Source of the DNA: Eutreptiella sp. 'Long Island Sound 2002'
Taxonomy: Eukaryota; Protista; Euglenida
Direction: 5' to 3'
Length of the DNA: 64,000 nt
Assembly (NCBI GenBank): GCA_964036045.1
Contig: OZ038379.1
Location: 21,576,001 to 21,640,000, forward strand
Made by a program: the position numbers and the translations under genes. Below the pieces are notes generated by a model. The model was not told where the DNA came from, made no database searches, and saw only the letters and a list, made by a program, of their open reading frames with translations. Shown piece after piece: positions 2-60,393 of this stretch (position 1 is its first letter; every line of letters starts with the position of its first letter).

Positions 2-3000
2 CGTGTGCGTCAGCGGGCCCTCCAGCGTCACGGCGGTGTGCGGGCGCACGGCGACGGTGCCGTTGCTGTGGAAGCCGCGACCGGCCAAGAGATGGTGCGT
101 CGGCTCCAGGAGCGCGACCAGATCCGAGGCCGCGAGCTGCGAGGCGAAGATCACGCTGGCGGCGATGCTGTTGAGGAGGGCGTGCACCCCGGCGCTGACA
201 AGCGGGCCTTCGAAGACGGTGGTGGCCCGTGCGATGGTGACATTGCCGGCGCTGGTCATGCCGCGGGCCCCGACGGTGTGCCGCACACGGAACAAGTCGT
301 CGGCGGCCGAGGAGCCCCCGGTAAAGAGGGCGGCGGCGCCGGCAGATAGCGATAGCAGGCCTTCGCCCCGGTGCCTCAATTCACCATGAAACGCGACCGA
401 AGCACCCGTTTCAATGGTGATGTTGCCCATGGACAGGAAGCCCAGCCCTCCGACGTAGTGCTCTGTGGAGCATCGGTCGCTCACTTGCAGCAGCTGCCGT
501 GCACTGCCCATTTGCAGATCGTCTTCCGTGAATGCAGCAATTTCCTCGGCACAACCGTCATCCACCGAAGAGCCAAACACCACCTTGGCACGGCTGCTCT
601 CCAAGTACGCCTGCACTCCGTAACTCCACAGCGACCCTGCAAATGTGGCCACAGACGTCTGGAACGTGATGTTACCGGCACTCCTCATGCCAAGGGCTGC
701 GATGTGGTGGTGCACAAGGGCTGCCTCATCCGCCATCCAGTTCTTGCCCTCGTCGTATCCAGCGAATGTCGCAACTGCCCCGGCAAACAGGTCGATGATG
801 CCCTGTCCCAGGTGCTTCAGAGGACCTTGGAACGTAGTCGCCGCTCCTGCCTCAATGCTGATGTTACCCATGGACTGGAACCCAAGGCCTCCAACCCAAT
901 GCCTGGTGAAGTCCTCATCACTCATCTGCAACAATCTGCGTGCACCAGACATGTCCTCCTCTGCCCTGCTGGCAAGAGAGACAGCAGCAAGCTCCTCGAT
1001 CCGGTCTTGGCTCAGCATGGAAGCAAACCTCACAACCGCACTGTTGCTGCTCATGTAAGCCTGCTTACCTTCACTCACCAATGGGCCCATGAAGATCGTC
1101 TCAGAGCGGTCGAAGCTCATGTTGCCAGCACTGATCATGCCCAGACCAGAAATGGAGTGCCGCACCAAAGCCATGATGCCCGTCATGAAATCTGGAATTG
1201 AGCCATATGCACCAGTGAACAGCACATGTCCGCCTGCATGCATATCGATCAGACCATCACCAGTATGATTCAGCGGGCCTTCAATCGTTGTATTGGCACC
1301 CTTTGTGATGCTGATGTTGCCCATGGACAGGAAGCCCAGCCCTCCGACGTAGTGCTCTGTGGTGTACTCCTCGGCTACTTGCAGCAGCCGGCGTGCACTG
1401 TCCATCTCCTGGCCATCCTGAGGGGTGTCCACCGAAGAGCCAAACACCACCTTGGCACGGCTGCTCTCCAAGTACGCCTGCACTCCGTAACTCCACAGCG
1501 ACCCTGCAAATGTGGCCACAGACGTCTGGAACGTGATGTTACCGGCACTCCTCATGCCAAGGGCTGCGATGTGGTGGTGCACAAGGGCTGCCTCATCCGC
1601 CATCCAGTTCTTGCCCTCGTCGTATCCAGCGAATGTCGCAACTGCCCCGGCAAACAGGTCGATGATGCCCTGTCCCAGGTGCTTCAGAGGACCTTGGAAC
1701 GTAGTCGCCGCTCCTGCCTCAATGCTGATGTTACCCATGGACTGGAACCCAAGGCCTCCAACCCAATGCCTGGTGAAGTCCTCATCACTCATCTGCAACA
1801 ATCTGCGTGCACCAGACATGTCCTCCTCTGCCCTGCTGGCACGAGAGACAGCAGCAAGCTCCTCGATCCGGTCTTGGCTCAGCATGGAAGCAAACCTCAC
1901 AACCGCACTGTTGCTGCTCATGTAAGCCTGCTTACCTTCACTCACCAATGGGCCCATGAAGATCGTCTCAGAGCGGTCGAAGCTCATGTTGCCAGCACTG
2001 ATCATGCCCAGACCAGAAATGGAGTGCCGCACCAAAGCCATGATGCCCGTCATGAAATCTGGAATTGAGCCATATGCACCAGTGAACAGCACATGTCCGC
2101 CTGCATGCATATCGATCAGACCATCACCAGTATGATTCAGCGGGCCTTCAATCGTTGTATTGGCACCCTTTGTGATGCTGATGTTGCCCATGGACAGGAA
2201 GCCCAGCCCTCCAACGTAGTGCTCTGTGGTGTACTCCTCGGCTACTTGCAGCAGCCGGCGTGCACTGTCCATCTCCTGGCCATCCTGAGGGGTGTCCACC
2301 GAAGAGCCAAACACCACCTTGGCACGGCTGCTCTCCAAGTACGCCTGCACTCCGTAACTCCACAGCGACCCTGCAAATGTGGCCACAGACGTCTGGAACG
2401 TGATGTTACCGGCACTCCTCATGCCAAGGGCTGCGATGTGGTGGTGCACAAGGGCTGCCTCATCCGCCATCCAGTTCTTGCCCTCGTCGTATCCAGCGAA
2501 TGTCGCAACTGCCCCGGCAAACAGGTCGATGATGCCCTGTCCCAGGTGCTTCAGAGGACCTTGGAACGTAGTCGCCGCTCCTGCCTCAATGCTGATGTTA
2601 CCCATGGACTGGAACCCAAGGCCTCCAACCCAATGCCTGGTGAAGTCCTCATCACTCATCTGCAACAATCTGCGTGCACCAGACATGTCCTCCTCTGCCC
2701 TGCTGGCACGAGAGACAGCAGCAAGCTCCTCGATCCGGTCTTGGCTCAGCATGGAAGCAAACCTCACAACCGCACTGTTGCTGCTCATGTAGGCGTCCGT
2801 TCCGTTACTCACCAGGGACCCCAAAAAGATGGTCTCGGACAGCACAAAACTGATGTTGCCCAAGGACCAGAAGCCCAGCCCTGCCACCGAATGCTTAGTA
2901 ACAGCAGCAGGCGACAGAGCCTTGCTGTGCAGCAGCCGTCGGGAAGAGGACGCAGCTTCATCAGGCAGGTCTACGGTAGACGAACCATGGGACGTAAAAA

Positions 3001-6000
3001 TGACTGTGGCATCGGAGCTGTACAACAGGGAGGTCTCGCCATGGCTTTGCAGGGGTCCTTCAAATGAGGTCACGGACCAGTCAAAGCTGATGTTACCCGC
3101 GCTCGTGAGACCCTCCGCAGCAACGCGATGGGGCACGATGTTGTTGCCTGTGAAACGTGCATGTGTACCAGATGTCATGTTAATGATCCCATCACCCTTG
3201 TGGTCCAGCGGGCCCTGGAAGGTGGCAGTGGCCCCTGTCAGAATACTGATATTGCCCATGGAAAGGAACCCGACCCCACCAATTAAGTGGTTGGTGAACG
3301 TCCGGAACATATCAGCACGCTGCTCTGGCATCTGCAACAGTCGGCGGGAACCGAAGGCGTTCTCGTTCGCATGCATCGTAGACAACAGGTCATCGGTCTC
3401 CTGCGGGCTTTGAGTGGCATCAAGAACAATGGTTGCGTTGATACTGTCCATGTATGCTGTCTCACCGTCACTGATAAGAGGAGCTTTGAAGGTCGTGATG
3501 GAAGTGTCGAAGCTGATATTGCCGGCACTCCGCATACCCCGGGATGCAACAAGATGCTTCACCATGGCATCCCTGTCCTTCAGGAAGTCCAGCTGCAGCA
3601 GCTGGCGGCCATTGCCCTGAGATTCCGCAGAGTACTTGCCAGTGAACAGCGCATGCGCTCCAGCAGTCATTGTGATGATCCCACGGCCGGTCTGGTTCAG
3701 TGGCCCCTGGAACGTTGTATCAGCACCGGTCACAATGCTGATGTTGCCCTTGGATTGGAAGCCCAAACCACCAACCAAGTGGTTGGTGAAGTTCTCAAAC
3801 ATGTGTGTGCTTCCGTCCTCCATTTGCAGCAGTCGGCGTTTACCCAGACCTTCGGCTGCCTCTTCAACCGCCTTCACCGTCATCCCAGCTGTTTGCCCAG
3901 AAACACCAGATGCAAACACAACAGTGGCGTTGATGCTGTCCATGATTGCAGTCTCTCCATCGCTCCGCAGGGGTCCCTCAAAGGTGGTCTCAGATACGTC
4001 GAAGCTGATGTTACCCGCACTGGCCATGCCCAACGCTGCAACACGATGCTTCACAAGCTTCGCCTGGTCAATGCCGTCGCCCTCCTGCAGCAGCTGCCGC
4101 CACATGGGGCTGCCAGCATCGCCGTATGATCCTGTAAACAGCGCATGTGCTCCAGCAGTCATGGTGATGATCCCACTGCCGGTGTGGTTCAGTGGTCCCT
4201 GGAACGTCGTATCAGCACCGGTCACAATGCTGACGTTGCCCATGGATAGGAAGCCCAGTCCACCAACCAAGTGGTTGGTGAAGTTCTCAAATATCTTCTT
4301 GCTTCCGTCTTCCATCTGCAGCAAACGGCGGGTGGTGAAGGGACTGTCTCCATCGTTATTCGCCGCGGAAAGAACTCTCGCGGTGTCCTCCGCGCTTTGG
4401 GTTGCATCAAACACAACCGTCGCATTCGTGCTGTCCATGTAGGCCGTCTTTCCGTCGCTCACAAGGGGCCCCTTGAAAGTCGTTACCGATACATCGAAGC
4501 TGATGTTGCCTGCACTGCGCATGCCCATGGCTGCCACTTCGTGCTTGACCATATCACCCCAAGAAGGAATGAATGATGATTCATCAAGCAGGCCACGGCC
4601 TGTTGACCCATACTTGCCAGTAAACAATGCATGTGCACCGGCCGTCATATCAATGATACCCTGGCCGGTGTGGTTCAATGGCCCCTGGAACGTTGTGTCC
4701 GCGCCAGATACGATGCTGATGTTGCCCATGGAAAGGAATCCCAGTCCTCCAACCAAGTGATTGGTGAAATTAGCGAACTTCCCATCCTTCATCTGCAACA
4801 GCCGACGCTTCATCAAAGTGGAATCGAGTGATGAGCTATCGGCAGTGTAAGAGTCATCGTCTAACTCTGTTGCATCGCTGGACGCAAACACAACCGTGGC
4901 ATTGATGCTGTCCATGTATGCTGTCTCACCATCGTTGTGCAGCGGACCTTCGAAGGTGGTCACTGATACATCAAAGCTGATATTGCCCTCACTGGCCATC
5001 CCCCTTGCAGCAACAAGATGCTTCACCAGCTTCTCTTGTCCATCCAACAACTTGAACTGCTGCAACTCCTTTCCGAGGCGCTTCTGAACCTGACCATAGT
5101 CACCAGTGAACAGCGCATGTGCTCCAGCAGTCATTGTGATGATCCCACGGCCGGTGTGGGTCAGTGGCCCCTGGAACGTCGTATCAGCACCAGTCACAAT
5201 GCTGATGTTGCCCTTGGATTGGAAGCCCAGTCCACCAACCAAGTGGTTGGTGAAGTTCTGGTACATTACATACCCTCCATCTTCCAGTTGTAGTAACCGC
5301 CGCATCCCCAGTTCTGTGACGTCATTGTCAGTCTGCACAATGTTAGCCTGAGCGATGATTTTCCCAACGTCTTCCTTGGAGAAGGGTGATGCGAACTCTA
5401 CAGTCGCATTGGCGCTCTTCATGTAGGCTGTCGTACCATCGCTAACCAGAGGACCTTCGAAGGATGTTACGGACCGATCAAAGCTGATATTACCTGCACT
5501 CATCATGCCCTTGGCCGCCACACGGTGGTTCACAAGGCCCTCTTTGTCAAGCATCTGCATCAGACCACGCCCGGCGAGCCCGTCGGGGTAGGCACCAGTG
5601 AACAACGCGTGTGCTCCCTCAGTCATGTCAATGAGGCCCTCACCAGTGTGATGCAATGCTCCCTGGAATGTGGTGTCAGCCCCACTTGTGATACTGATAT
5701 TGCCCATGGAGAGGAACCCAAGGCCTCCCACCAAGTGCCTGGTGAAGTTCTCATACATCATGGAGTCCCCGTCTTCGGTTTGCAGCAGCCTGCGCTTTGT
5801 TAGCGTACTTGGTCTGTCACCTTCGTAGCTCGCCTGGGAAAGGCGTTTCTTCGACGTACCAGAGGAAAACACGACGCTGGCATTGATGCTGTTCATGTAG
5901 GCAGTCTTGCCATCACTCTGAAGACGTGATTCAAAAGTGGTCACCGAGAGGTCGAAGCTAATGTTTCCTGCACTCGTCATCCCGAGGGCCGCAATACGAT

Positions 6001-9000
6001 GCTTCACCATCCCCTCCTGACCTGGCATTTGGAGCAGAGTGCGAGAAATGGTGGCATCGGGGTAGTCACCAGTGAACAATGCATGCGCTCCCTCAGTCAT
6101 GTCAATTAGCCCATCGCCGGTATGAGTCAGTGACCCCTGGAACGTTGTGTCCGCACCGGTCACAATGCTGATGTTGCCCTTGGATTGGAAGCCCAGTCCA
6201 CCGACCAGGTGGTTGGTGAAGTTCTCGTACATTCCAACGCGCTGCCCAGACACTTGGAGGAGACGGCGGGATGAAAAATCAAAACCTTGAGTACCCATGG
6301 AGGCAAGGTCGAGGTAAATTGTTTCTGAGCTTTGGGTTGCATCAAACACAACCGTTGCATTCGTGCTGTCCATGTAGGCCGTCTTTCCGTCGCTCACAAG
6401 GGGCCCCTTGAAAGTCGTTACCGATACATCGAAGCTGATGTTGCCTGCACTGCGCATGCCCATGGCTGCCACTTCGTGCTTGACCATATCATCCCAAGAA
6501 GGAATGAATGATGATTCATCAAGCAGGCCACGGCCTGTTGACCCATACTTGCCAGTAAACAATGTATGTGCACCGGCCGTCATATCAATGATACCCTGGC
6601 CGGTGTGGTTCAATGGCCCCTGGAATGTTGTGTCCGCGCCAGATACGATGCTGATGTTGCCCATGGAAAGGAATCCCAGTCCTCCAACCAAGTGATTGGT
6701 GAAATTAGCGAACTTCCCATCCTTCATCTGCAACAGCCGACGCTTCATCAAAGTGGAATCGAGTGATGAGCTATCGGCCGTAGAGGTGTCACCGGGTGAT
6801 GCTGTGGTATCGCTGGACGCAAACACAACCGTGGCATTGATGCTGTCCATGTATGCTGTCTCACCATCGTTGTGCAGCGGACCTTCGAAGGTGGTCACTG
6901 ATACATCAAAGCTGATATTGCCCTCACTGGCCATCCCCCTTGCAGCAACAAGATGCTTCACCATGGCATCCCTGTCCTTCAGGAAGTCCAGCTGCAGCAG
7001 CTGGCGGCCATTGCCCTGAGATTCCGCAGAGTACTTGCCAGTGAACAGCGCATGCGCTCCAGCAGTCATTGTGATGATCCCACGGCCGGTCTGGTTCAGT
7101 GGCCCCTGGAACGTCGTATCAGCACCGGTCACAATGCTGATGTTGCCCTTGGATTGGAAGCCCAAACCACCAACCAAGTGGTTGGTGAAGTTCTCAAACA
7201 TTTGTGTGCTTCCGTCCTCCATTTGCAGCAGTCGGCGTTTACCCAGACCTTCGGCTGCCTCTTCAACCGCCTTCACCGTCATCCCAGCTGTCTGCCCAGA
7301 AACACCAGATGCAAACACAACAGTGGCGTTGATGCTGTCCATGATTGCAGTCTCTCCATCGCTCCGCAGGGGTCCCTCAAAGGTGGTCTCAGATACGTCG
7401 AAGCTGATGTTACCCGCACTGGCCATGCCCAACGCTGCAACACGATGCTTCACAAGCTTCGCCTGGTCAATGCCGTCGCCCTCCTGCAGCAGCTGCCGCC
7501 ACATGGGGCTGCCAGCATCGCCGTATGATCCTGTAAACAGCGCATGTGCTCCAGCAGTCATCGTGATGATCCCACTGCCGGTGTGGTTCAGTGGTCCCTG
7601 GAACGTCGTATCAGCACCAGTCACAATGCTGACGTTGCCCATGGATAGGAAGCCCAGTCCACCAACCAAGTGGTTGGTGAAGTTCTCAAACATCTTCTTG
7701 CTTCCGTCTTCCATCTGCAACAGTCTGCGCTTCACCAGGCTGGCGTCGATTTCCTCATCCTTCGCCCCGTTGTACTCTCCACTACCAGACAGTTGGGCCA
7801 CTGCGTTTCGCACCTGCTCCTCGCTCATGCTCATGACAGGCGATGAGAACACGACACTCGCATTGGCACTGTCCATGTAAGCCGTCTCCCCATCACTACG
7901 CAGTGGTCCCTCAAAGGTTGTAACCGACAAATCGAAGCTGATGTTTCCTGCACTCTTCATCCCCAAGGCTGCTACACGATGCTTCACAAGATCCTGCTCT
8001 CCATCCATGAAATTCACGGCCAGCATCCTGCGTGCCAAAGAAGCCCCAATGGCATCGCCATACTTGCCAGTAAACAATGCATGTGCACCGGCCGTCATAT
8101 CAATGATACCCTGGCCGGTGTGGTTCAATGGCCCCTGGAATGTTGTGTCCGCGCCAGATACGATGCTGATGTTGCCCATGGAAAGAAATCCCAGTCCTCC
8201 AACCAAGTGATTGGTGAAATTAGCGAACTTCCCATCCTTCATCTGCAACAGCCGACGCTTCATCAAAGTGGAATCGAGTGATGAGCTATCGGCAGTCCCA
8301 TCCGCAGACCATTGCTTCTGTGAGCTAGCCTGCAATGCTGTGGTATCGCTGGACGCAAACACAACCGTGGCATTGATGCTGTCCATGTATGCTGTCTCAC
8401 CATCGTTGTGCAGCGGACCTTCGAAGGTGGTCACTGATACATCAAAGCTGATATTGCCCTCACTGGCCATCCCCCTTGCAGCAACAAGATGCTTCACCAT
8501 GGCATCCCTGTCCTTCAGGAAGTCCAGCTGCAGCAGCTGGCGGCCATTGCCCTGAGATTCCGCAGAGTACTTGCCAGTGAACAGCGCATGCGCTCCAGCA
8601 GTCATTGTGATGATCCCACGGCCGGTCTGGTTCAGTGGCCCCTGGAACGTCGTATCAGCACCGGTCACAATGCTGATGTTGCCCTTGGATTGGAAGCCCA
8701 AACCACCAACCAAGTGGTTGGTGAAGTTCTCAAACATTTGTGTGCTTCCGTCCTCCATTTGCAGCAGTCGGCGTTTACCCAGACCTTCGGCTGCCTCTTC
8801 AACCGCCTTCACCGTCATCCCAGCTGTCTGCCCAGAAACACCAGATGCAAACACAACAGTGGCGTTGATGCTGTCCATGATTGCAGTCTCTCCATCGCTC
8901 CGCAGGGGTCCCTCAAAGGTGGTCTCAGATACGTCGAAGCTGATGTTACCCGCACTGGCCATGCCCAACGCTGCAACACGATGCTTCACAAGCTTCGCCT

Positions 9001-12000
9001 GGTCAATGCCGTCGCCCTCCTGCAGCAGCTGCCGCCACATGGGGCTGCCAGCATCGCCGTATGATCCTGTAAACAGCGCATGTGCTCCAGCAGTCATCGT
9101 GATGATCCCACTGCCGGTGTGGTTCAGTGGTCCCTGGAACGTCGTATCAGCACCAGTCACAATGCTGACGTTGCCCATGGATAGGAAGCCCAGTCCACCA
9201 ACCAAGTGGTTGGTGAAGTTCTCAAACATCTTCTTGCTTCCGTCTTCCATCTGCAACAGTCTGCGCTTCACCAGGCTGGCGTCGATTTCCTCATCCTTCG
9301 CCCCGTTGTATTCTCCACTACCAGACAGTTGGGCCACTGCGTTTCGCACCTGCTCCTCGCTCATGCTCATGACAGGCGATGAGAACACGACACTCGCATT
9401 GGCACTGTCCATGTAAGCCGTCTCCCCATCACTACGCAGTGGTCCCTCAAAGGTTGTAACCGACAAATCGAAGCTGATGTTTCCTGCACTCTTCATCCCC
9501 AAGGCTGCTACACGATGCTTCACAAGATCCTGCTCTCCATCCATGAAATTCACGGCCAGCATCCTGCGTGCCAAAGAAGCCCCAATGGCATCGCCATACT
9601 TGCCAGTAAACAATGCATGTGCACCGGCCGTCATATCAATGATACCCTGGCCGGTGTGGTTCAATGGCCCCTGGAATGTTGTGTCCGCGCCAGATACGAT
9701 GCTGATGTTGCCCATGGAAAGAAATCCCAGTCCTCCAACCAAGTGATTGGTGAAATTAGCGAACTTCCCATCCTTCATCTGCAACAGCCGACGCTTCATC
9801 AAAGTGGAATCGAGTGATGAGCTATCGGCAGTCCCATCCGCAGACCATTGCTTCTGTGAGCTAGCCTGCAATGCTGTGGTATCGCTGGACGCAAACACAA
9901 CCGTGGCATTGATGCTGTCCATGTATGCTGTCTCACCATCGTTGTGCAGCGGACCTTCGAAGGTGGTCACTGATACATCAAAGCTGATATTGCCCTCACT
10001 GGCCATCCCCCTTGCAGCAACAAGATGCTTCACCATGGCATCTTTGTCCTTCAGGAAGTCCAGCTGCAGCAGCTGGCGGCCATTGCCCTGAGATTCCGCA
10101 GAGTACTTGCCAGTGAACAGCGCATGCGCTCCAGCAGTCATTGTGATGATCCCACGGCCGGTCTGGTTCAGTGGCCCCTGGAACGTCGTATCAGCACCGG
10201 TCACAATGCTGATGTTGCCCTTGGATTGGAAGCCCAAACCACCAACCAAGTGGTTGGTGAAGTTCTCAAACATTTGTGTGCTTCCGTCCTCCATTTGCAG
10301 CAGTCGGCGTTTACCCAGACCTTCGGCTGCCTCTTCAACCGCCTTCACCGTCATCCCAGCTGTTTGCCCAGAAACACCAGATGCAAACACAACAGTGGCG
10401 TTGATGCTGTCCATGATTGCAGTCTCTCCATCGCTCCGCAGGGGTCCCTCAAAGGTGGTCTCAGATACGTCGAAGCTGATGTTACCCGCACTGGCCATGC
10501 CCAACGCTGCAACACGATGCTTCACAAGCTTCGCCTGGTCAATGCCGTCGCCCTCCTGCAGCAGCTGCCGCCACATGGGGCTGCCAGCATCGCCGTATGA
10601 TCCTGTAAACAGCGCATGTGCTCCAGCAGTCATGGTGATGATCCCACTGCCGGTGTGGTTCAGTGGTCCCTGGAACGTCGTATCAGCACCAGTCACAATG
10701 CTGACGTTGCCCATGGATAGGAAGCCCAGTCCACCAACCAAGTGGTTGGTGAAGTTCTCAAACATCTTCTTGCTTCCGTCTTCCATCTGCAACAGTCTGC
10801 GCTTCACCAGGCTGGCGTCGATTTCCTCATCCTTCGCCCCGTTGTACTCTCCACTACCAGACAGTTGGGCCACTGCGTTTCGCACCTGCTCCTCGCTCAT
10901 GCTCATGACAGGCGATGAGAACACGACACTCGCATTGGCACTGTCCATGTATGCCGTCTCCCCATCACTACGCAGTGGTCCCTCAAAGGTTGTAACCGAC
11001 AAATCGAAGCTGATGTTTCCTGCACTCTTCATCCCCAAGGCTGCTACACGATGCTTCACAAGATCCTGCTCTCCATCCATGAAATTCACGGCCAGCATCC
11101 TGCGTGCCAAAGAAGCCCCAATGGCATCGCCATACTTGCCAGTAAACAATGCATGTGCACCGGCCGTCATATCAATGATACCCTGGCCGGTGTGGTTCAA
11201 TGGCCCCTGGAATGTTGTGTCCGCGCCAGATACGATGCTGATGTTGCCCATGGAAAGAAATCCCAGTCCTCCAACCAAGTGATTGGTGAAATTAGCGAAC
11301 TTCCCATCCTTCATCTGCAACAGCCGACGCTTCATCAAAGTGGAATCGAGTGATGAGCTGTCGGCAGTCCCATCCGCAGACCATTGCTTCTGGGAGCTAG
11401 CCTGCAATGCTGTGGTATCGCTGGACGCAAACACAACCGTGGCATTGATGCTGTCCATGTATGCTGTCTCACCATCGTTGTGCAGCGGACCTTCGAAGGT
11501 GGTCACTGATACATCAAAGCTGATATTGCCCTCACTGGCCATCCCCCTTGCAGCAACAAGATGCTTCACCATGGCATCTCTGTCCTTCAGGAAGTCCAGC
11601 TGCAGCAGCTGGCGGCCATTGCCCTGAGATTCCGCAGAGTACTTGCCAGTGAACAGCGCATGCGCTCCAGCAGTCATTGTGATGATCCCACGGCCGGTCT
11701 GGTTCAGTGGCCCCTGGAACGTCGTATCAGCACCGGTCACAATGCTGATGTTGCCCTTGGATTGGAAGCCCAAACCACCAACCAAGTGGTTGGTGAAGTT
11801 CTCAAACATTTGTGTGCTTCCGTCCTCCATTTGCAGCAGTCGGCGTTTACCCAGACCTTCGGCTGCCTCTTCAACCGCCTTCACCGTCATCCCAGCTGTC
11901 TGCCCAGAAACACCAGATGCAAACACAACAGTGGCGTTGATGCTGTCCATGATTGCAGTCTCTCCATCGCTCCGCAGGGGTCCCTCAAAGGTGGTCTCAG

Positions 12001-15000
12001 ATACGTCGAAGCTGATGTTACCCGCACTGGCCATGCCCAACGCTGCAACACGATGCTTCACAAGCTTCGCCTGGTCAATGCCGTCGCCCTCCTGCAGCAG
12101 CTGCCGCCACATGGGGCTGCCAGCATCGCCGTATGATCCTGTAAACAGCGCATGTGCTCCAGCAGTCATCGTGATGATCCCACTGCCGGTGTGGTTCAGT
12201 GGTCCCTGGAACGTCGTGTCAGCACCAGTCACAATGCTGACGTTGCCCATGGATAGGAAGCCCAGTCCACCAACCAAGTGGTTGGTGAAGTTCTCAAACA
12301 TCTTCTTGCTTCCGTCTTCCATCTGCAACAGTCTGCGCTTCACCAGGCTGGCGTCGATTTCCTCATCCTTCGCCCCGTTGTACTCTCCACTACCAGACAG
12401 TTGGGCCACTGCGTTTCGCACCTGCTCCTCGCTCATGCTCATGACAGGCGATGAGAACACGACACTCGCATTGGCACTGTCCATATATGCCGTCTCCCCA
12501 TCACTACGCAGTGGTCCCTCAAAGGTCGTAACCGACAAATCGAAGCTGATGTTTCCTGCACTCTTCATCCCCAAGGCTGCTACACGATGCTTCACAAGAT
12601 CCTGCTCTCCATCCATGAAATTCACGGCCAGCATCCTGCGTGCCGGAGCAACCAATGATTCACCGTACTCCGGATATGAGCCAGTAAACAATGCATGTGC
12701 ACCGGCCGTCATATCAATGATACCCTGGCCGGTGTGGTTCAATGGCCCCTGGAACGTTGTGTCCGCGCCAGATACGATGCTGATGTTGCCCATGGAAAGG
12801 AATCCCAGTCCTCCAACCAAGTGATTGGTGAAATTAGCGGACTTCCCATCCTTCATCTGCAACAGCCGACGCTTCATCAAAGTGGAATCGAGTGATGAGC
12901 TATCGGCCGTAGAGGTGTCACCGGGTGATGCTGTGGTATCGCTGGACGCAAACACAACCGTGGCATTGATGCTGTCCATGTATGCTGTCTCACCATCGTT
13001 GTGCAGCGGACCTTCGAAGGTGGTCACTGATACATCAAAGCTGATATTGCCCTCACTGGCCATCCCCCTTGCAGCAACAAGATGCTTCACCATGGCATCT
13101 TTGTCCTTCAGGAAGTCCAGCTGCAGCAGCTGGCGGCCATTGCCCTGAGATTCCGCAGAGTACTTGCCAGTGAACAGTGCATGCGCTCCAGCAGTCATTG
13201 TGATGATCCCACGGCCGGTCTGGTTCAGTGGCCCCTGGAACGTCGTATCAGCACCGGTCACAATGCTGATGTTGCCCTTGGATTGGAAGCCCAAACCACC
13301 AACCAAGTGGTTGGTGAAGTTCTCAAACATTTGTGTGCTTCCGTCCTCCATTTGCAGCAGTCGGCGTTTACCCAGACCTTCGGCTGCCTCTTCAACCGCC
13401 TTCACCGTCATCCCAGCTGTCTGCCCAGAAACACCAGATGCAAACACAACAGTGGCGTTGATGCTGTCCATGATTGCAGTCTCTCCATCGCTCCGCAGGG
13501 GTCCCTCAAAGGTGGTCTCAGATACGTCGAAGCTGATGTTACCCGCACTGGCCATGCCCAACGCTGCAACACGATGCTTCACAAGCTTCGCCTGGTCAAT
13601 GCCGTCGCCCTCCTGCAGCAGCTGCCGCCACATGGGGCTGCCAGCATCGCCGTATGATCCTGTAAACAGCGCATGTGCTCCAGCAGTCATCGTGATGATC
13701 CCACTGCCGGTGTGGTTCAGTGGTCCCTGGAACGTCGTATCAGCACCAGTCACAATGCTGACGTTGCCCATGGATAGGAAGCCCAGTCCACCAACCAAGT
13801 GGTTGGTGAAGTTCTCAAACATCTTCTTGCTTCCGTCTTCCATCTGCAACAGTCTGCGCTTCACCAGGCTGGCGTCGATTTCCTCATCCTTCGCCCCATT
13901 GTACTCTCCACTACCAGACAGTTGGGCCACTGCGTTTCGCACCTGCTCCTCGCTCATGCTCATGACAGGCGATGAGAACACGACACTCGCATTGGCACTG
14001 TCCATGTATGCCGTCTCCCCATCATTACGCAGTGGTCCCTCAAAGGTCGTAACCGACAAATCGAAGCTGATGTTTCCTGCACTCTTCATCCCCAAGGCTG
14101 CTACACGATGCTTCACAAGATCCTGCTCTCCATCCATGAAATTCACGGCCAGCATCTTGCGTGCCAAAGAAGCCCCAACGGCATCGCCATACTTGCCAGT
14201 AAACAATGCATGTGCACCGGCCGTCATATCAATGATACCCTGGCCGGTGTGGTTCAATGGCCCCTGGAATGTTGTGTCCGCGCCAGATACGATGCTGATG
14301 TTGCCCATGGAAAGAAATCCCAGTCCTCCAACCAAGTGATTGGTGAAATTAGCGAACTTCCCATCCTTCATCTGCAACAGCCGACGCTTCATCAAAGTGG
14401 AATCGAGTGATGAGCTGTCGGCAGTCCCATCCGCAGACCATTGCTTCTGGGAGCTAGCCTGCAATGCTGTGGTATCGCTGGACGCAAACACAACCGTGGC
14501 ATTGATGCTGTCCATGTATGCTGTCTCACCATCGTTGTGCAGCGGACCTTCGAAGGTGGTCACTGATACATCAAAGCTGATATTGCCCTCACTGGCCATC
14601 CCCCTTGCAGCAACAAGATGCTTCACCATGGCATCTCTGTCCTTCAGGAAGTCCAGCTGCAGCAGCTGGCGGCCATTGCCCTGAGATTCCGCAGAGTACT
14701 TGCCAGTGAACAGTGCATGCGCTCCAGCAGTCATTGTGATGATCCCACGGCCGGTCTGGTTCAGTGGCCCCTGGAACGTCGTATCAGCACCGGTCACAAT
14801 GCTGATGTTGCCCTTGGATTGGAAGCCCAAACCACCAACCAAGTGGTTGGTGAAGTTCTCAAACATTTGTGTGCTTCCGTCCTCCATTTGCAGCAGTCGG
14901 CGTTTACCCAGACCTTCGGCTGCCTCTTCAACCGCCTTCACCGTCATCCCAGCTGTCTGCCCAGAAACACCAGATGCAAACACAACAGTGGCGTTGATGC

Positions 15001-23374: not shown

Positions 23375-23646
23375 CTGCAGGAGTGACAGTTCGGAAGGCG
23401 GTGTCATTTGGTCGGTCCGGCAGGAGATCAGTGTTGCCCTTTGCCTGAGCAGTTTTTGTGGGCTTTTGCCTCTCAGAAGGTGCATGTCAGGGACCAAGAA
23501 AATATGTGCGCACGCACACATGGCTTTTCCCGTGGTCACGGCATCCCGGCCATTGCCTTTTGATAACAACGCCTTCGGCAAACACACACACGTAGAGAAA
23601 GAGAGAGAGAGAGAGACTTGCATGAACCCGCGCATACAACAGATAC

Positions 23647-43900: not shown

Positions 43901-46177
43901 TGCCCCCACCTCATAGCCACGCTGCAGCGGGTCGTGGATGAGGTGGCTCTGCCCATGTGGATGCCGGGCCAGTGCTCAGGGACCACCCCCATCGTGGTCC
44001 GAGGTCCCGGTGGGCCGCGATCGGCGGCGGCGGCGGCCCCTGCCCCCCGGGTGGAGGTGTACACAACTCTGTATGGCGCCGTCGCGCAGGTGGTGGTCCC
44101 CCCGACGGTGTACAAGACGGTACAGGCCCTGGGCTACCATCACCTCGGCGACCTCTACACAGGGAATCACCAGGTGCTACCGGAGCGAGCCCTGAAGAGA
44201 CGAGCACCAACCCGCAAGGGGATCCCGGGGCTACGTGCGTGGCTAGCCCGCCACGCTGCGGTACTAGTCTCGCTCTTGAGGGAACCCACGCCGCGATGGC
44301 AAGCGGCACCAAAGGACTGGGTCCCGGGGGCCGTGCCCACCTATCAGGCGGAAGTCATAGTGGGGGGCCGGGCGGCCAAAACCACCCGAATGGAGACGAT
44401 ATACCATAGGGGGCAGCCCCTCCGGATGACCGCGGCCCTGCAGGACACCATGGAGACCGCGGGCTGGGCGCCAGAACCCCGGGTGTGCCAGCAGCCCCCG
44501 GGCACCTTGCCCAGCGACACCAGGCTCCACCGCCTCCTGGTGGCCCTCCTGGATATCCAGGTGCAGGTGGATGCGCCACTGCACACCCAGCTGTGGGGCG
44601 ATCACCGGCAGGAGTCCCTGGCCCAGCTCCAGCGCACTGGGGTCAGGGCGCCCACCGTCGTGTGGACGACAGCCCCCCCGACTGCCGCCTACTAGAACTG
44701 GGCCAGCACATCGCAGGCCCCTCTCGTGACGGTCACCTCGACGCTGCCGCCGTTTCCGTGGATCGCCATAGCCCCGGCGGCGGTGGCGCGCTTCCAATAT
44801 CCAGCGGAGTGCATGGCGCACAAATGCCCGGGGCACCCGCACAAGGGGCCCCTCTATTACTCCCTCGATACGGTGGGGTCAGTGCCGGCGGAGCTTCACC
44901 AGGCCCTGCGCACCCACCTCAGGGAGCACCATGGGGACATGGCCCTCCTGGCGCCACACGGCCGGGCGACCAGCCCCCCGCGAGTGTTGGCCCCTGAGAC
45001 TCGCCCGGGCGTCTGGTTCCATGACCTGCCTGCGCTAGCGACCCTCCGAGGCAGTGTCATGGCGGTGGATGCGGGGGCCACGCAGGCGGGTATGGCCATG
45101 GCCGGGGTCGTCCAGAGCGGGCCTGGGGAGTACCAGGCCCAGGTGGCCTCAGGAGTGGGCACCTCCCAGGAGGCGGAGGCGATGGCCCTCCTCTCGTATG
45201 CCCGCCGGCTGGCGACACAGCCGGGGGTTTACTAGCTGGTGCCGGACTCGGAGGCAGCAGTGGGGGCCCTCCGCACGTACCAGGAAGGAGGGCACTGCGG
45301 AGATGGCATCCACCACCTCTACGCCACTGTCCTGGGAGGGCAGCGCCTCTCCCCGAGGTCTGCCATCAATGTGGTGACCACACCATCGCACTGGATCACG
45401 GACCTCAACGTCCGTGTGGACGCAGCGACGCGGGAGCCGCCGGGGGTAGACCTCACGTGGCTCCTCAGGCGCCCCTACTCATTTATCCCCCCAGTGCCCT
45501 TCCGCGACCAGTGCCAGCTCTCCCCGACGGCGCTGAGTGACTGGTTGCAGGACCGGGCCTCCATACCGGCACAAGGCATCTACGAGGCCCGCTGGGGGGT
45601 AAACTTCATGCCAGGGGGGGGCCTCCCCCTGGACTGGTTCGACCACGACCAGCAGCGCCACATCACGGCGCATCGCATGGACAACGTCCCGACCATGGCC
45701 GTCCTAGCCCACCGTTCCTCCCACCGGGGCACGGTGCTGGATACAACGTGCCTCCTGTGCGGGACACAGCCCGAGACGGCGCCCCACCTGTGGGCCTGCT
45801 CGGCTCAATCGCACGAGTGGGGGCTAGCCCGCCGGCGCCTCGCAGCGTGGCTCGACCAGAAGGTGGGGCCACGGGCGGCCCCAGTGCGTCACCAGCTGTG
45901 GGAACCGACTGTGCTGGAGCAGTGGGCGGCAGCCCTGCGGACCCCCTCCATGCAGCTGGCCCACCTGGAGTGTACGGGGCCCCACTCGCTGGGCACGGAG
46001 TTCTTCCGCCACGTCGTGGAGGAGTCCATACGGATCTGGTACGCCCACGCCAAGGCGCGTGCCACACTGCTGAAGGCCCGCCTGGGCCCGGGCAGCACGA
46101 TGGCGTGGGCGTTGCAGGAGCTGCGCCTGCACCAGCAAGCAGAAAGGGAAGGGGTGCAGCGGGAGCTCCTGGAATAA
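40945..46177 (+). pseudogene. LINE ORF2 pseudogene: APE endonuclease + reverse transcriptase + RNase H + CCHC finger
   Basis: APE motifs WLNVRG, LAEAQ, VTDTNS, SRIDT and LLSDH, with a frameshift at ~41613. RT motifs DLAEFFDVI, GTPQG and WVDD. RNase H motifs VDAG, SQEAEAMA, PDSEAA and SHW..LNVRVD. CLLCGTQPETAPHLWAC finger. In-frame TAG stops at 43703, 44693 and 45233. Confidence 0.92.
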
Positions 46178-46344
46178 GCGCGGTCGCCAGAGGCGAACTC
46201 ACCAGGTCTCCCCGACTCCCCCTCCCCCTGCCGAGGCCTACACACTTACGCACGGCGCGCACACAACACACACAGCCCAGCCCGTTTACCTTTACCCGTG
46301 GGTAGACATCCCGGCCTTTTGCCTTTTGGTAACAGCGCCTTCGG

Positions 46345-46601
46345 CACACCACGGCACAGCGGAGCACAGCACAGCACAGCACAGCACAGCACAGCACAGC
46401 ACAGCACAGCACAACACAACACAGCACAGAACAACACAACACAGCACAGAACAACACAACACAACACAACACAACACAACACAACACAACACAACACAAC
46501 ACAACACAACACAACACAACACAACACAGCACAACACAACACAACACAACACAACACAACACAACACAACACAACACAACACAACACAACACAACACAAC
46601 A
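46345..46601 (+). repeat. (CACAG)n/(CACAA)n microsatellite, 3' tail of the LINE
   Basis: Direct reading; begins ~170 bp after the ORF2 stop. Confidence 0.92.
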
Positions 46602-47235
46602 CGGGCTTGCGGCGTGGCTAGACCACAAACTAGGCAGCCGGGCTGCATCGGTGCCCAACCAGCTGTGGGAGCCGGCGCTTCTAGAGCAGTGGGTGGCTGC
46701 GTTGCGCACGCCCTCCATGCAACGAGCTCACATGGAATACTCTGGGCCCAGACACTGGGGACTGAGTTCCTGAGTTCCTGCGCTACGTCATCAAGGAGTC
46801 CATCAGAATCTGGTACACCAATGCCAAGGCGTGTGCCACGTAGTTGAAGGCCAGCCTGGGCGTGGGTGTTGCCGGAGCTACGCCTGCACCAGTAGGCGGA
46901 ACGAGGGAATCCCGCGGGAGCTCCTGGGCTGACAGCCATCGCCTGGTGGATGGCCTCCAAGTCTCCCCTTTCCCCCGCTTTCCGCCGATGTCAACACACT
47001 TACACACAGTGCGCACGCTACACACACTGCCCTCTTGTTTACTTGTACCCGTGGGTAGACACCCTGGCCATTGCCTTCTGGTAACAGCGCCTTCGGCACA
47101 TCACGACACAACATGACACAACATGACACAACACAACACAACACAACACAACACAACACAACACAACACAACACAACACAACACAACACAACACAACACA
47201 ACACAACACAACACAACACAACACAACACACCACA
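46602..47235 (+). mobile_element. Decayed 3' fragment of the same LINE family with its own (CACAA)n tail
   Basis: LAAWLDHKLGSRAASVPNQLWEPALLEQWVAALRTPSM matches the end of ORF2; the same 3' UTR motif is followed by acaac repeats at 47101-47235. Confidence 0.85.
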
Positions 47236-49331
47236 CCATTGCCCCGGGCCAGTGGACCCACCACCGTCACTACCTCCTCCTACTGCGAGGGCTGCAGTTG
47301 GCGGTGGACCAGGTGGGCCTGCCCATGTGGCTCCCACGGCAATGCCAGGGGACGTCCCCCATCATAGCCCTCGCCCCGACCCCCCCCCCCTAGCGGGGGC
47401 CGGCCCAACAGCGCCCGCCCCAGTAGCCCCGTATGACACGGCGTATGGTGCCAGAACCCTTGTCCACATGCCTCAGGCAGTCTTCACCGCAGCCCTGGCA
47501 CTGGGGTACCACCACGTTGGGGACTTCTACACCCCGGAGGGCACATGTGCAGTGCCAACGACCTACGAGCAGGGGTGCCCTGGGGCCGGACGGTGGACAT
47601 GATCCGGACATGGCTCCGGCAGCACGATGCCGTGTGGCAGCCCCTAGTGGGGGCCCCGGCCCCCCGATGGCAACAAGCCCCCAAGACATGGACGCCAGGC
47701 CCAATACGGCCAGACACCACCACGGCAGTCATCGGCGAGGCCAAAACCACCCCTACCGGGTGGTGTACCAACACTGCACGGCCATACAGGTCACCACGGC
47801 CTGCAAGACGTCATGGCAATCATGGGATGGTCTGTGGTGCTGCCCACCTGTGAGCAGCCACGCTAGGACCTCCCCAGCGACACCCGACAGCACCGACTGG
47901 TGAGCCTATTCGACATCAACACGCAGGCCGAGCCCCCCCTCCATATGTGCTTGCACGACGAGCGGTGGGTAACCACACTCCCGAAGCTGTAGGCCACAGG
48001 CACGGAGGGTCCCACGATGGTGTGGCACCGCAGCCGGCCGGACAGCCCTTACTGGGAGTGGGTGGCTCGTGCACGGCACACAACTCTAACGATCACCCCC
48101 ACCCCGCCGCCGGAGCCGTGGATCGAGCTCCGAACCAAGGCGGTGGCCCTGTTCAAATACCCCACCTGATGCCTTACCCACGAATGCCCACGGCACCTGC
48201 ATCGAGGCCCCCTCTACATGGCGCTGCATGCACTAGGGGCCCTACCGTCGGAGCTAGGCCTAGCACTCCAAACCCACCTACGGGAGCACTTTGGGGGACA
48301 CGCAACGCTCCATCCCCATAAGACCCGACGGCAAGTCCCATGTACCTGCAGGCAGACGTAGCCGGGGATATGGTTCCATGACCAACCCCCGCTGGCCACG
48401 ATCCATCGTGGCCACTGACGCCGGCACCACCCCGGCGGGCATGACGATGGCGCTCACGTATGAGAGAGCACTAGGGGAATACACGACCAAGACAACGGCG
48501 GGGATAGGAACATCCTAAGAAGGAGAGGCCTTGACCCTGGTGCTCTGCATCCGAAGGCTAGAGGTACACCACGGCACCTATTGGGTGGTACCAGACTCGG
48601 AGTCAGCGGTGGGCGCCCTCTGAACGTACCAAGAAGGAGGGAAGTGTGGTGACGGGATACACCACCTGTGAGCACACACCTTGGGGCGGAACACCTATCC
48701 CCGAGGTTCGCGATCAACGTGGTGGTAACCCGCTCCCAGTAGATCACCTCCATCAATGTCCGGGTGGACGTGGCCACCAAGGAGGAGCCACACGTGGATC
48801 TCACATGGATGCTACGGCACCGGTACGCCTACCTCCCCCTGGTACTGTACCGGGACCACTGCCATCTAGCTCCAACGGACGCGCAAAATGGTTGCAAGAG
48901 CAGGCGGCGCTACAAGCACAGGAGGGGACCCCACTACCAACCAGGCCTGGGCCTGCCCCTGGACTGGTTCACCAGCGACCAGCAGCGGCATATAGGGGCC
49001 CACCGCATGCGCAACTTGCCCACCATGACGGTGCTGGCAGAATGCGCACAGCACCGCAACCTGCAGATGCACCAGCAGTGCCTGCTGTGCGATAGTGGCC
49101 GGAGACCGCCCAACATGTGTGGGCCTGCCCGGTGCAGACCCACCAATGGTGCCCATCACACACCCCTGCCCGTTTTCCTATTCCCGTAAGTAAGACATCC
49201 CAGCCATTGCCATATGGTAACAGCGCCTTTAGCACACCACACCACAACACAACACAACACAACACAACACAACACAACACAACACAACACAACACAACAC
49301 AACACAACACAACACAACACAACACAACACA
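47236..49331 (+). mobile_element. Older decayed LINE copy (pre-RNase H region to zinc finger) with (CACAA)n tail
   Basis: Homologous to ~43905-45780 (e.g. VATDAGTTPAGM, GTYWVVPDSESAV, GLPLDWF..DQQRHI.AHRM, CLLC), with many frameshifts; tail at 49241-49331. Confidence 0.85.
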
Positions 49332-49382
49332 AATTCAGCAGCAGTAGCAGTAGCAGCAGCAGCAACAGCAACGTAGACACAC

Positions 49383-49730
49383 CAGTGTGATTCAGAGGGC
49401 CCTGAAATGTGGTATCAGCACCGGAGTCAATGCTCACGTTGCCCTTTGAGGCAAAACCCTCCCCACCGACCAAATGATATGTTGCATTCTGCAGCATTGT
49501 CTGGGCGCCATCTTCTGTCTGTAACAGGCGGCGGATGGCAAACCCAGTGGCCTCGCCATCACCACCATACAGAGACTGAACCTCGTCCCAAGACTGGCCT
49601 GACACACTGGAGGAGAAGGTAACTTTGCCCCCGGTACTGTTCATGAAGGCCCCGTCACCGTCGCTGATCAGGGACCCCTCGAAAACGCTCTCCGACTTCT
49701 CGAAAGAAAGATTGCCCGCACTCATCACAC
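49383..49730 (-). CDS. Exon of giant repeat gene (upstream of the 19.2-kb intron)
   Basis: gccttag|GT GTG ATG AGT GCG GGC AAT ... AAT CAC ACT G|gtgtgt; 348 nt, phase 1->1; contains IRRLLQ; joins PLNHTG|SGIINM across intron 30215-49382. Confidence 0.88.
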
Positions 49731-51754: not shown

Positions 51755-51898
51755 CTGAACCAGCAACAACATGCCGCGTGTCTCCCAAGGCATCATCTGT
51801 GTACACACCACTGAACATCATGTTGGCACCAGATCCCAGGTTGACACGGTTGCCAGTCCCGCTGTGGCTGAGGGGCCCAGACATAGTCACACTTGCAC
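51755..51898 (-). CDS. Exon of giant repeat gene
   Basis: gtgtctgcag|GT GCA AGT GTG ... GCT GGT TCA G|gtgtgc; 144 nt; ASVTMSGPLSHSGTGNRVNLGSGANMMFSGVYTDDALGDTRHVVAGSG. Confidence 0.82.
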
Positions 51899-53307: not shown

Positions 53308-53422
53308 CTGCCGTGACGCTGATGTTCCCTTCAGATCCAAATCCTTTGCCTCCAATTTGATGGGACGTTGTAGTCGACTGCATGAGCCGGCGTTCAGCAC
53401 CCGCCGTCGTCGCCAAAGACCC
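53308..53422 (-). CDS. Exon of giant repeat gene (RRLMQ variant)
   Basis: ttctgcttag|GGG TCT TTG ... GTC ACG GCA G|gtggtt; 115 nt, phase 0->1; GSLATTAGAERRLMQSTTTSHQIGGKGFGSEGNISVTAG. Confidence 0.8.
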
Positions 53423-53827: not shown

Positions 53828-53997
53828 CGCAGATCCTGTGAACGTGACGCGTGCCCCTTTGCTGTCCAGTCGCGCCTGATTGCCGCTGCTTGTCAGGGGG
53901 CCCTGGAAGGTGGCATCTGAACCGGAGAACTTGGTGGTGCCCGCACTGTTCATGCCCGCACCACCGATGGTGTGCACGGTACTGGGCGCTTGGCAGC
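53828..53997 (-). CDS. Exon of giant repeat gene
   Basis: Pyrimidine tract then ccacag|GC TGC CAA ... GGA TCT GCG|gtattg; 170 nt, phase 1->0; HTIGGAGMNSAGTTKFSGSDATFQGPLTSSG. Confidence 0.78.
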
Positions 53998-55044: not shown

Positions 55045-55341
55045 CTGTGCACGCGCAGACGCGCGTGGCGTTGGTGTTGTTAGTTACGGCGTCACACGTC
55101 GGGTCGCTGCCATTTGTTTTCATGACCACGACCCCACCCCCTCGAGATGAATCCCACAGACATCCGCTGTCATCGTCGGCAGACTCGCTGGTAAACGTCG
55201 GGTTCATGCCCAGGTCCTCGATGATCTCCTCGCACATTTCGACGGAGCCAGCAGCCGTTTTCAGTGCATCCACGTCACAAGTCCTCTGCTTGGCTGCACA
55301 AGCGGCGCTGCAAGCCTCGCCGGCGGCAGCCATGAAGTAGT
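55045..55341 (-). CDS. Phase-symmetric exon encoding a cysteine-rich module within the giant gene
   Basis: ctgtccag|AC TAC TTC ATG ... TGC GCG TGC ACA G|gtttgt; 297 nt, phase 1->1; DYFMAAAGEACSAACAAKQRTCD...MCEEI...SGCLWD...PTCDAV...TRVCAC; fits the phases of both flanking exons. Confidence 0.75.
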
Positions 55342-57031: not shown

Positions 57032-57155
57032 CTGGACAGGCTCCGTTGTCAAAATTGATCTGTCCACCGGATCCCATGCTCACCACATTCCCATTTCCGC
57101 TGTGGCTGAACGGCCCCTTGAATCTCACGGTGCCTTGATCCACACCAACGGTGCC
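57032..57155 (-). CDS. Exon of giant repeat gene
   Basis: tcgcacag|GGC ACC GTT ... GCC TGT CCA G|gtgtgc; 124 nt, phase 0->1; GTVGVDQGTVRFKGPFSHSGNGNVVSMGSGGQINFDNGACP. Confidence 0.75.
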
Positions 57156-57784: not shown

Positions 57785-57975
57785 CTGTGACGTCATGCCC
57801 TGCCCGGAAACACTATGCGTACTGGCCTGGAAATTCATCGAACCACCGGTGAGGGACACATGCGCATTGGGCCCTCGGCTCTTCAGGCTGCCAGTCACAC
57901 TCGTGTCGGCGTTCTCCATCTGTATGGGCCCTCGGCTCTGAACCCCGTCACCACCAAGGTTGTGGGCCGTACGGC
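57785..57975 (-). CDS. Exon of giant repeat gene (divergent units)
   Basis: gctgcttcag|GC CGT ACG GCC ... ACG TCA CAG|gtgtgt; 191 nt, phase 1->0; HNLGGDGVQSRGPIQMENADTSVTGSL...HSVSGQGMTSQ. Confidence 0.75.
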
Positions 57976-59802: not shown

Positions 59803-59887
59803 CTTGAGTGCTGGTATCGCTACCCAACTTGAGGGTTCCATCATTGGCGAGGGACCCAGTGCCGCTTTGAGTGAATGGGGCAGTGAC
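59803..59887 (-). CDS. Exon of giant repeat gene (divergent)
   Basis: cctttgtgcag|GTC ACT GCC ... ACT CAA G|gtccta; 85 nt, phase 0->1. The exons from here to 23647 sum to 2850 nt = 950 codons exactly. Confidence 0.65.
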
Positions 59888-60315: not shown

Positions 60316-60393
60316 CTCCAAAGTCGCTCTGTTACTCATTGAACCGGTGGTCACCAACGAGCCTGACACGTTGCAAGACGTTTCGAACGAGAC
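60316..60393 (-). CDS. Probable small exon of giant repeat gene
   Basis: Pyrimidine tract ...cttgtccacag|GTC TCG TTC GAA ... TTG GAG|gtattg; 78 nt; VSFETSCNVSGSLVTTGSMSNRATLE resembles ISFxxSxTTFxGPL..G....NATV. Confidence 0.55.

Follow-up and report, generated by a model that had tools for sequence, protein, structure and literature searches.

Does the stretch of the marine or estuarine euglenid Eutreptiella sp. 'Long Island Sound 2002' analysed here (the window: 64,000 nucleotides of contig OZ038379.1, positions 21,576,001 to 21,640,000, GenBank assembly GCA_964036045.1) hold the plus-strand open reading frames (ORFs) that its ORF track lists over 1-24 kb, or a single very large gene on the opposite strand? 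A preliminary description, made from the letters alone, had proposed a minus-strand gene for one very large repeat protein, spanning more than 60 kb and with neither end within reach. We regard it as very nearly certain that the window carries a real giant coding gene that is expressed, intron-containing, nuclear and on the minus strand. The DNA of the window is also found in ENA assembly ERZ25074135 (contig ctg10954_42x_l); window and ENA contig are one and the same assembly. Two sequences, L003 and L006, are identical to the window over their overlaps except for one 1-bp G-run indel, and L007 continues the same contig. The 1-bp difference between window and ENA contig lies at position 54191 and is intronic.

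The core of the gene is a giant exon, for which a continuous minus-strand frame from 23374 to the window edge had been claimed. A frame scan of the minus strand from 2 to 23830, which includes the claimed interval, found 0 stops over 7,943 codons; within 2-23374 the other two minus frames hold 332 and 350 stops and the plus frames 60, 102 and 386. The 5' end of the exon lies at 23374, next to an acceptor CTGCAG at 23375-23376 (pyrimidine tract and CAG at 23375-23377). Ahead of it, the segment 23830-23375 has no repeat character and overlaps an upstream exon in a different frame; the open frame 5' of 23374 is intron read-through. Inside the window the exon counts 7,791 codons, after which the open frame continues past the window start. 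Following it into the flanking DNA, an extension that the preliminary description had proposed, we find that the frame terminates 833 nt past the window start, so that the giant exon has at most 8,068 codons plus the stop (24.2 kb), and the stop codon, or the last donor, is just beyond the window start. The ENA gene call (8,117 aa) begins at window position 23521 and ends at window position -832. With about 24.2 kb, the exon ranks among the longest coding exons of which we are aware.

2..23374, minus strand: giant exon (stop-free frame; ENA call; RNA contigs over 21400-23161)

The listed plus-strand ORFs find a simple explanation in the composition of this exon. Tyrosine is scarce in the encoded protein (107 of 7,791 residues), and in the long plus-strand frame 60 of 60 stops coincide with minus-frame Tyr, His or Gln codons. 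The plus-strand ORFs over 1-23 kb, among them the periodic ORFs of 391 residues opposite the giant exon, are therefore antisense shadows of a Tyr-poor gene, as had been supposed. That the exon itself is missing from the ORF track was likewise a correct reading: ORFs that run off the window go unlisted, which is why the track shows plus-strand frames only over 1-24 kb. Standard annotation would miss or shred such a gene; a prokaryote-style caller split the public-assembly copy into dozens of nameless ORFs.

Evidence that the gene is used comes from environmental RNA. Four estuary metatranscriptomes contain 33-42% of the sampled words of 21400-25400, and three of them together with one DNA run were aligned to this interval. 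The RNA contigs cover 21400-23161, 23818-24205 and 24803-25228 and leave the intron bins at zero depth; the DNA run extends over the introns. One contig of run X5 joins 24205 to 24803 (junction J2), with CT..AC on the plus strand corresponding to GT..AG on the minus strand. In runs X6 and X8, contigs stop at 25228 and go on with 30 letters that match 29824-29853 exactly (junction J3); this match defines a GT-AG intron from 25227 to 29821. An X6 contig carries a 19-base loose end at 24803 that has no whole match in the window, and it agrees with J2 because its last 13 bases match 24193-24205. The presence of RNA on the exons, its absence from the introns and the J2 and J3 joints thus establish that the gene is transcribed and that two introns are spliced as predicted. 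The preliminary description had named lack of transcription and lack of junction-spanning RNA as outcomes that would overturn it; what we see are contigs on exons only and two junctions crossed. In addition, the near-identical transcripts in four estuary metatranscriptomes mean that the gene is expressed in nature.

At 22105-22122 and 22874-22904 the RNA contigs, and in part also the DNA run, depart from the window sequence in an in-frame block of 21 nt and a cluster of substitutions. These differences correspond to alternative linker versions among the 1,536-bp copies described below; they stem from other copies or alleles and not from editing.

How far upstream does the gene reach? Upstream exons were defined by picking AG and GT sites around anchors from a repeat-unit profile built on the giant exon. 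This profile matches upstream on the minus strand only, at 23.6-25.2, 29.8-30.2, 49.4-49.8 and 51.8 kb, and further, again on that strand only, at 53.3-54.0, 57.0-58.0 and 63.5 kb. The resulting chain and the introns J1 to J4 are as follows:

23375..23646, minus strand: intron J1, 272 bp, GT..AG, phase 0 (splice sites; the junction rebuilds a full unit)
23647..24206, minus strand: exon, 560 nt (RNA contigs over 23818-24205)
24207..24803, minus strand: intron J2, 597 bp, GT..AG, phase 1 (RNA contig joint)
24804..25226, minus strand: exon, 423 nt (RNA contigs over 24803-25228)
25227..29821, minus strand: intron J3, 4,595 bp, GT..AG, phase 1 (RNA contig loose ends)
29822..30214, minus strand: exon, 393 nt (unit profile and splice sites)
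30215..49382, minus strand: intron J4, 19,168 bp, GT..AG, phase 1 (splice sites and restored consensus)
49383..49730, minus strand: exon, 348 nt (unit profile and splice sites; conserved in L002)
51755..51898, minus strand: exon, 144 nt (splice-site chain; conserved in L002)
53308..53422, minus strand: exon, 115 nt, with an RRLMQ linker motif (unit profile and splice sites)
53828..53997, minus strand: exon, 170 nt (unit profile and splice sites; conserved in L002)
55045..55341, minus strand: Cys-rich module exon, symmetric phase 1, 297 nt (99 codons), no repeat unit
57032..57155, minus strand: exon, 124 nt, degenerate unit (profile and splice chain)
57785..57975, minus strand: exon, 191 nt, degenerate unit (hidden Markov model (HMM) E 1e-13)
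59803..59887, minus strand: exon, 85 nt, first of the 950-codon chain (splice-site chain)
63460..63507, minus strand: part of another upstream repeat exon (HMM match)

The 11 upstream GT-AG exons from 59887 to 23647 total 2,850 nt, that is, exactly 950 codons with 0 stops, and their phases run in register into the giant exon. Every acceptor in the chain is a YAG after a pyrimidine-rich tract and every donor begins with GT; across at least six junctions, the spliced sequence can be aligned to the unit HMM from end to end. This independent rebuild bears out the earlier claims that the phases chain, that the junctions restore the repeat consensus and that the chain from 59887 to 23647 sums to 950 codons; the chain that adds up in this way has 11 exons and not the 13 then counted. 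While J2 and J3 are read from RNA, J1, J4 and the junctions farther upstream are predicted from sequence logic and paralogue comparison.

The paralogues are important for deciding whether all of these exons belong together. The same assembly contains at least two more paralogous loci, L001 (ENA ctg9098_44x_l; frames of 911 and 1,515 residues) and L002 (ENA ctg10392_37x_l), with DNA identities to the window of 64-74%. In L002 the called frame has 12,631 codons (37.9 kb) and small exons lie ahead of it; it begins at L002:12567, its first 2,792 codons were read, and it is half as long again as the window frame. Two or more neighbouring genes would be an alternative to a single one, with the exons at 49-60 kb (and those at 63-73 kb) separate from the giant exon and the exons at 23.6-30.2 kb. 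Such a division would fit with the absence of any RNA contig across J4 or the junctions upstream of 30.2 kb, with the failure to find a start, and with the unusual length of the 19.2-kb intron, in which there are long plus-strand ORFs and a weak reverse-transcriptase signal. Against it, the window exons from 55357 down to 24058 are collinear with the upstream exons of L002, which are packed into 9 kb, and J4, with 19,168 bp in the window, corresponds there to an intron of about 300 bp; the shared exon order is kept inside 12.5 kb of the paralogue. Moreover, where the window has J1, L002 has no intron, and its frame passes uninterrupted over the sequence that splicing would create in the window. 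The collinear exon order and the continuity of L002 at J1 support a single gene across both J4 and J1. In the same direction, 950 stop-free codons run in chained phase with each junction completing a split unit, and no terminal or initial exon signature was seen between the exons. We consequently hold separate genes to be quite improbable and continue with a single gene. The Cys-rich exon 55045-55341, for which a Pfam scan gave no match, is 47% identical to L002 38-256.

Beyond the window, same-strand unit matches continue at 66.7, 68.1-69.1, 70.1, 71.8 and 72.7 kb (window coordinates), and one more exon is probable at about 73.45-73.64 kb. A hunt for a first exon or signal peptide in the next 9.7 kb past about 73.6 kb (L007 1-9,700) gave no convincing candidate. 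The gene extends over some 74 kb or more, and neither of its ends falls inside the window: the description of one very large repeat protein over more than 60 kb with unresolved ends is borne out, the stop lying 833 nt past the window and the repeat exons reaching about 73.6 kb. The gene model inside the window has 8,741 codons (950 + 7,791), slightly fewer than the at least 8,790 aa first given; that figure is exceeded once the sequence outside is counted, when the encoded protein has at least about 9,018 residues (950 + 8,068), leaving out the exons between 60 and 74 kb. The epithet titin-scale was too generous, as some 9,000-10,000 residues are a quarter to a third of titin. Between two probable upstream exons, at L007:10300-10470 (window ~73125-72955), there is a microsatellite with a 15-bp period that reads as a PHHTT peptide repeat in every frame.

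What kind of protein does this gene encode? Its repeat unit is about 50 residues long and rich in Gly, Ser, Thr, Ala and Asn, with a core of the type H-x-V-G-G-x-G-F-x-S-x-G-N-I-S ... T-T-F-x-G-P-L ... G ... A ... F. The units are arranged as A/B pairs of about 160-176 residues, and three pairs make a 512-residue superunit; the window model holds 107 units and the whole protein more than that. A large part of the giant exon is a tandem array of these superunits:

4330..21538, minus strand: region with a young tandem array, 9 copies of the 1,536-bp (512-codon) superunit, 98.0-99.7% identical, three unit pairs of ~170 residues in each (Tandem Repeats Finder, copy boundaries, identity matrix)

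A tenth segment at the 3' side of the array is longer and more diverged (~92%). By the near-identity of its copies, the 1,536-bp array is young and grows by unequal recombination, and in this way it offers a clean case of protein length evolving by in-frame unequal recombination.

The units are joined by linkers with a median length of 24 residues (range 2-111) that are acidic (D+E 16.7% compared with 6.4% in the cores) and unalignable except for one motif. In this motif R, L and L never vary and the R and Q on either side hardly ever do, the most frequent variants being RRLLQ (49) and RQLLQ (25), and an x-x-D-G is conserved downstream of the Q. In its general form, R-x-[LMIV]-[LM], the motif is found in 90 of the 107 linkers and always 8-17 residues ahead of the next unit. 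N-x-S/T sequons number 218, compared with 58 +/- 7 after shuffling. Proline makes up 1.8% of residues in cores and linkers alike, and there are no Pro/Thr/Ser tracts.

The coding sequence is under purifying selection: among diverged units and paralogues, differences at third positions are about twice those at first or second positions, and dN/dS in the minus frame is 0.17-0.24. This bears on a further alternative, in which the locus is a decaying or non-functional repeat whose frame is still open only for the youth of the array, which has had too little time to gather stops, or whose length is an assembly artefact. Nine superunits that are 98-99.7% identical would be expected under this alternative, the copy number has no independent support in that window and ENA contig are one assembly, and the RNA contigs collapse at repeat boundaries. 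Set against these points, units that have diverged to 54-63% amino acid identity (within the exon and between paralogues) are still free of stops and show a dN/dS of about 0.2, RNA is made from the exon and lacks both of the introns that it covers, and a second locus holds a frame of 12,631 codons. We therefore give a decaying or artefactual repeat very little credence and proceed from a functional gene. At L001:10800-14548 (plus strand) the repeat frame ends mid-unit and is followed by about 1,230 unrelated stop-free codons; Pfam finds nothing in this tail, which includes a hydrophobic stretch resembling a membrane span, with basic residues after it. Either an inserted gene or, by read-through of an intron, an exon for a C-terminal anchor could account for it.

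The fold was predicted with AlphaFold2 on a two-pair piece, using a 29-row alignment in which all rows are paralogous units. The model has a predicted template modelling score (pTM) of 0.75, and by the predicted local distance difference test (pLDDT) its cores score 90-96 and its linkers <50; strand triplets recur every ~25 residues. Foldseek searches against PDB and clusters of the AlphaFold database returned weak matches, mostly beta-helices, with E >0.03 and template modelling scores <0.3. VIA-align gave Z 13-16.4 at a root-mean-square deviation of ~3 Å over ~200 residues spanning both unit pairs, the matches being Vag8, pertactin, Ag43, HMW1, EtpA, SRRP, tapirin, Candida Awp adhesins, tailspikes and pectate lyases. 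The characteristic feature of beta-helices, three-strand rungs of ~22-27 residues per turn in a continuous helix, is present in the predicted model. On the strength of this model we consider it highly probable that the protein forms one continuous right-handed parallel beta-helix with two three-stranded rungs per unit, from which disordered linkers are looped out. With 107 units, two rungs each and ~4.8 Å per rung, the rod would be ~100 nm long.

By sequence, the family stands apart. A Pfam scan of three 1,000-residue pieces gave no real match, the families over the cut-off being without a single stretch that passes the E-value limit; in the same pieces Beta_helix/PbH1, Fil_haemagg, Chlam_PMP and Pertactin did not appear at a meaningful score, Fil_haemagg_2 scoring E 0.8; fn3_2 (E 0.08) was far below its cut-off. 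In language-model features there is a faint resemblance to Fil_haemagg_2 (score 0.67). Searching PDB by sequence yielded no match. An exhaustive HMMER scan of 1.84 billion representative proteins yielded 14 relatives, all of them short fragments, mostly from the same assembly and none named beyond "hypothetical protein"; those from outside the assembly are unnamed environmental fragments and two doubtful matches. Of these outside sequences, Logan contig P0001 looks genuine; the JGI matches P0012 and P0014 (35-36% identity over short stretches) are weak and probably spurious, P0012 overlapping an NRPS-like gene (nonribosomal peptide synthetase) on the opposite strand. A profile search gave 10 matches, none of them new, and a homologue search limited to giant proteins came back blank although the 12,631-residue paralogue exists, which makes this search uninformative. 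Literature searches turned up no such protein from euglenids. The sequence family is new and appears confined to this organism or its close kin; it enlarges the beta-helix repeat proteins by a family from a group of eukaryotes in which hardly any surface protein has been characterised.

Membership in several known groups of giant or surface proteins was considered and rejected. For titin/obscurin, Pfam found no Ig domain in the three pieces and the predicted fold is a beta-helix. For mucins, proline is too low in cores and linkers and the linkers are acidic, not rich in Pro/Thr/Ser. DGF-1 of Trypanosoma cruzi, a group of large euglenozoan surface proteins, is set apart by sequence, no DGF-1 model appearing in the Pfam scan at E up to 1. 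For two-partner secretion (TPS) proteins and filamentous haemagglutinin, the obstacles are the GT-AG introns, of which RNA shows two to be spliced, and the lack of a TPS domain in the available exons.

The closest likenesses are in architecture. Like the autotransporter passengers pertactin, Vag8 and Ag43 and the TPS proteins filamentous haemagglutinin, HMW1 and EtpA, the protein is predicted to have three-strand rungs of ~25 residues in a long rod and, like these bacterial beta-helix adhesins, it is very long, repetitive, Cys-poor and rich in Gly, Asn, Ser and Thr. The bacterial adhesins differ in having no significant sequence match to the euglenid gene (Fil_haemagg_2 as above), which is a eukaryotic spliced gene with neither a TPS domain nor a beta-barrel translocator in its available part. 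We know of no counterpart in bacterial adhesins of the regular, looped-out acidic linkers with RRLLQ. The A-domains of Candida glabrata Awp proteins and the binding region of Lactobacillus SRRP similarly use a beta-helix as a surface adhesin domain (Z 15-16), but as single domains of ~300 residues followed by other repeats and without sequence similarity, whereas here the helix is repeated more than 100 times. Plant pectin methylesterases are themselves beta-helix proteins. The central exons of MUC16 and MUC19, and titin, share with the present gene a very long exon of tandem in-frame repeats that expanded recently; they differ from it in that the euglenid protein has 1.8% Pro, no Ig, FN3 or SEA domains, and predicted folded rungs.

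On the indirect evidence of the fold class, the sequons and the Cys-rich module, we suggest that the protein is secreted or exposed at the surface. In this model, (i) the small exons, with degenerate units and one Cys-rich module, lead into the ~24.2-kb exon and the protein would enter the secretory pathway, (ii) N-glycosylation would occur at the conserved N-x-S/T positions of the units, (iii) the protein would serve as an extracellular or cell-surface fibre or adhesin, and (iv) a Golgi subtilase of the S1P/SBT6.1 type may dock or cut at the RRLL motifs, and such cuts would nick the rod or release modules. The role as an extracellular fibre, taken on its own, is tentative and falls somewhat short of probable; the whole reading, a blend of its parts in which a secreted, N-glycosylated surface or extracellular fibre is possibly cut at RRLL, we judge to be moderately probable.

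As for the linker motif, RRLL and RRIL are recognition motifs of S1P/SKI-1 (PMC2685025). In plants, pro-pectin-methylesterases are processed at RRLL and RKLL motifs, and the subtilases that process them include SBT6.1, which is S1P (bioRxiv 10.1101/2022.07.28.501549). An R-x-hydrophobic motif of the S1P/SKI-1 type in an exposed segment is found here in 90 of 107 linkers, exposure being predicted from the linker pLDDT of <50. The identity with RRLL suggests Golgi processing by analogy. The known substrates of S1P/SKI-1 (SBT6.1), Lassa GP-C (RRLL), pro-pectin-methylesterase (RRLL/RKLL) and RALF23, resemble the linkers in having the same four-residue motif in an exposed segment; unlike the linkers, they have one or two sites, compared with ~90 here, where a conserved Q would occupy P1' and x-x-D-G follows, and where cleavage is proposed by analogy with them. 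R-x-L-x-Q also fits the PEXEL pattern of apicomplexans. A putative protease for R-x-L-x-Q may accordingly be S1P-like or PEXEL-type. The presence of RRLL(Q) in looped-out linkers provides a testable hypothesis of S1P-type mass processing outside animals and plants.

Several observations weigh against the reading of a secreted fibre from a single spliced gene. The RNA evidence consists of assembled environmental metatranscriptome contigs that are strandless and of low depth (2-4 in unique sequence), and it does not include J1 (23374/23647), J4 (30214/49383) or any junction upstream of 30.2 kb. The 5' end of the gene lies beyond ~73.6 kb and the last 277 codons lie outside the window; neither an N-terminus nor a signal peptide or transmembrane segment came to light in the available exons. 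How many near-identical copies the array has is taken from one assembly. The sequon excess arises from about five conserved positions per pair that are repeated, so that as independent evidence it is overstated, and sequons are weak evidence of glycosylation in any case, as ladders of Asn and Ser/Thr are also structural in beta-helices. The AlphaFold2 alignment was shallow, and Foldseek by itself gave weak matches. Finally, the conserved Q and the downstream x-x-D-G exceed any S1P consensus, and RQLL departs from the arenaviral consensus R-(R/K/H)-L-x.

Alternatively, the product could be a giant polyprotein, cut by an S1P-like subtilase or by a PEXEL/TEXEL-type aspartic protease (after RRL) to release ~50-100 modules of 80-170 residues. 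Consistent with such a scheme, the motif is the most conserved feature of free-running acidic linkers that are predicted to be disordered, it matches known S1P sites and stands at a fixed distance before each unit, and the array amplifies whole units in frame. Euglena plastid proteins, too, are made as polyprotein precursors. The predicted structure argues differently: AlphaFold2 stacks successive pairs in a continuous helix (pTM 0.75), so that cuts in looped-out linkers need not part the modules, and an uncapped beta-helix of two to four rungs would be a poor stand-alone domain. Furthermore, the motif is lost in 17 of 107 linkers, many of them B-type linkers in diverged units. We thus regard a polyprotein as unlikely and favor the continuous fibre. 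More speculative still, and rather improbable in our estimation, is a euglenid family of precursors of 9,000-13,000 residues that a Golgi S1P-like protease would cut at ~50-100 RRLL-Q sites into stoichiometric, N-glycosylated mini beta-helices, or that would form a multiply nicked self-assembling rod, with a copy number tuned as the 1,536-bp in-frame array rapidly expands and contracts; these would be the largest polyprotein factories yet seen.

The introns have contents of their own. J4 has a GC content of 67-73% and contains plus-strand ORFs of 1,202, 756, 329 and 313 aa between 37340 and 46174, which have a third-position GC content (GC3) of ~0.8 and no Pfam match; language-model features of the 756-aa ORF are like those of non-LTR (non-long-terminal-repeat) reverse transcriptases (0.93). 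Together the ORFs are probably a GC-rich LINE-like (long interspersed nuclear element) retroelement insertion, which would account for the 60-fold difference in length between J4 and its counterpart in the paralogue. Scanning the window for Rfam families and tRNAs found nothing. J4 also includes a 94-bp x 24.5 tandem array; this repeat, at 34656-36962 with 93% matches among its 24.5 copies, leaves frames of 670-760 codons open in all three minus frames. More intron repeats comprise 9-bp arrays, a 47/93-bp array, two (CACAA)n tracts and a perfect 62-bp x 4 repeat (31201-33121; 46365-46602; 47097-47235; 62892-63140).

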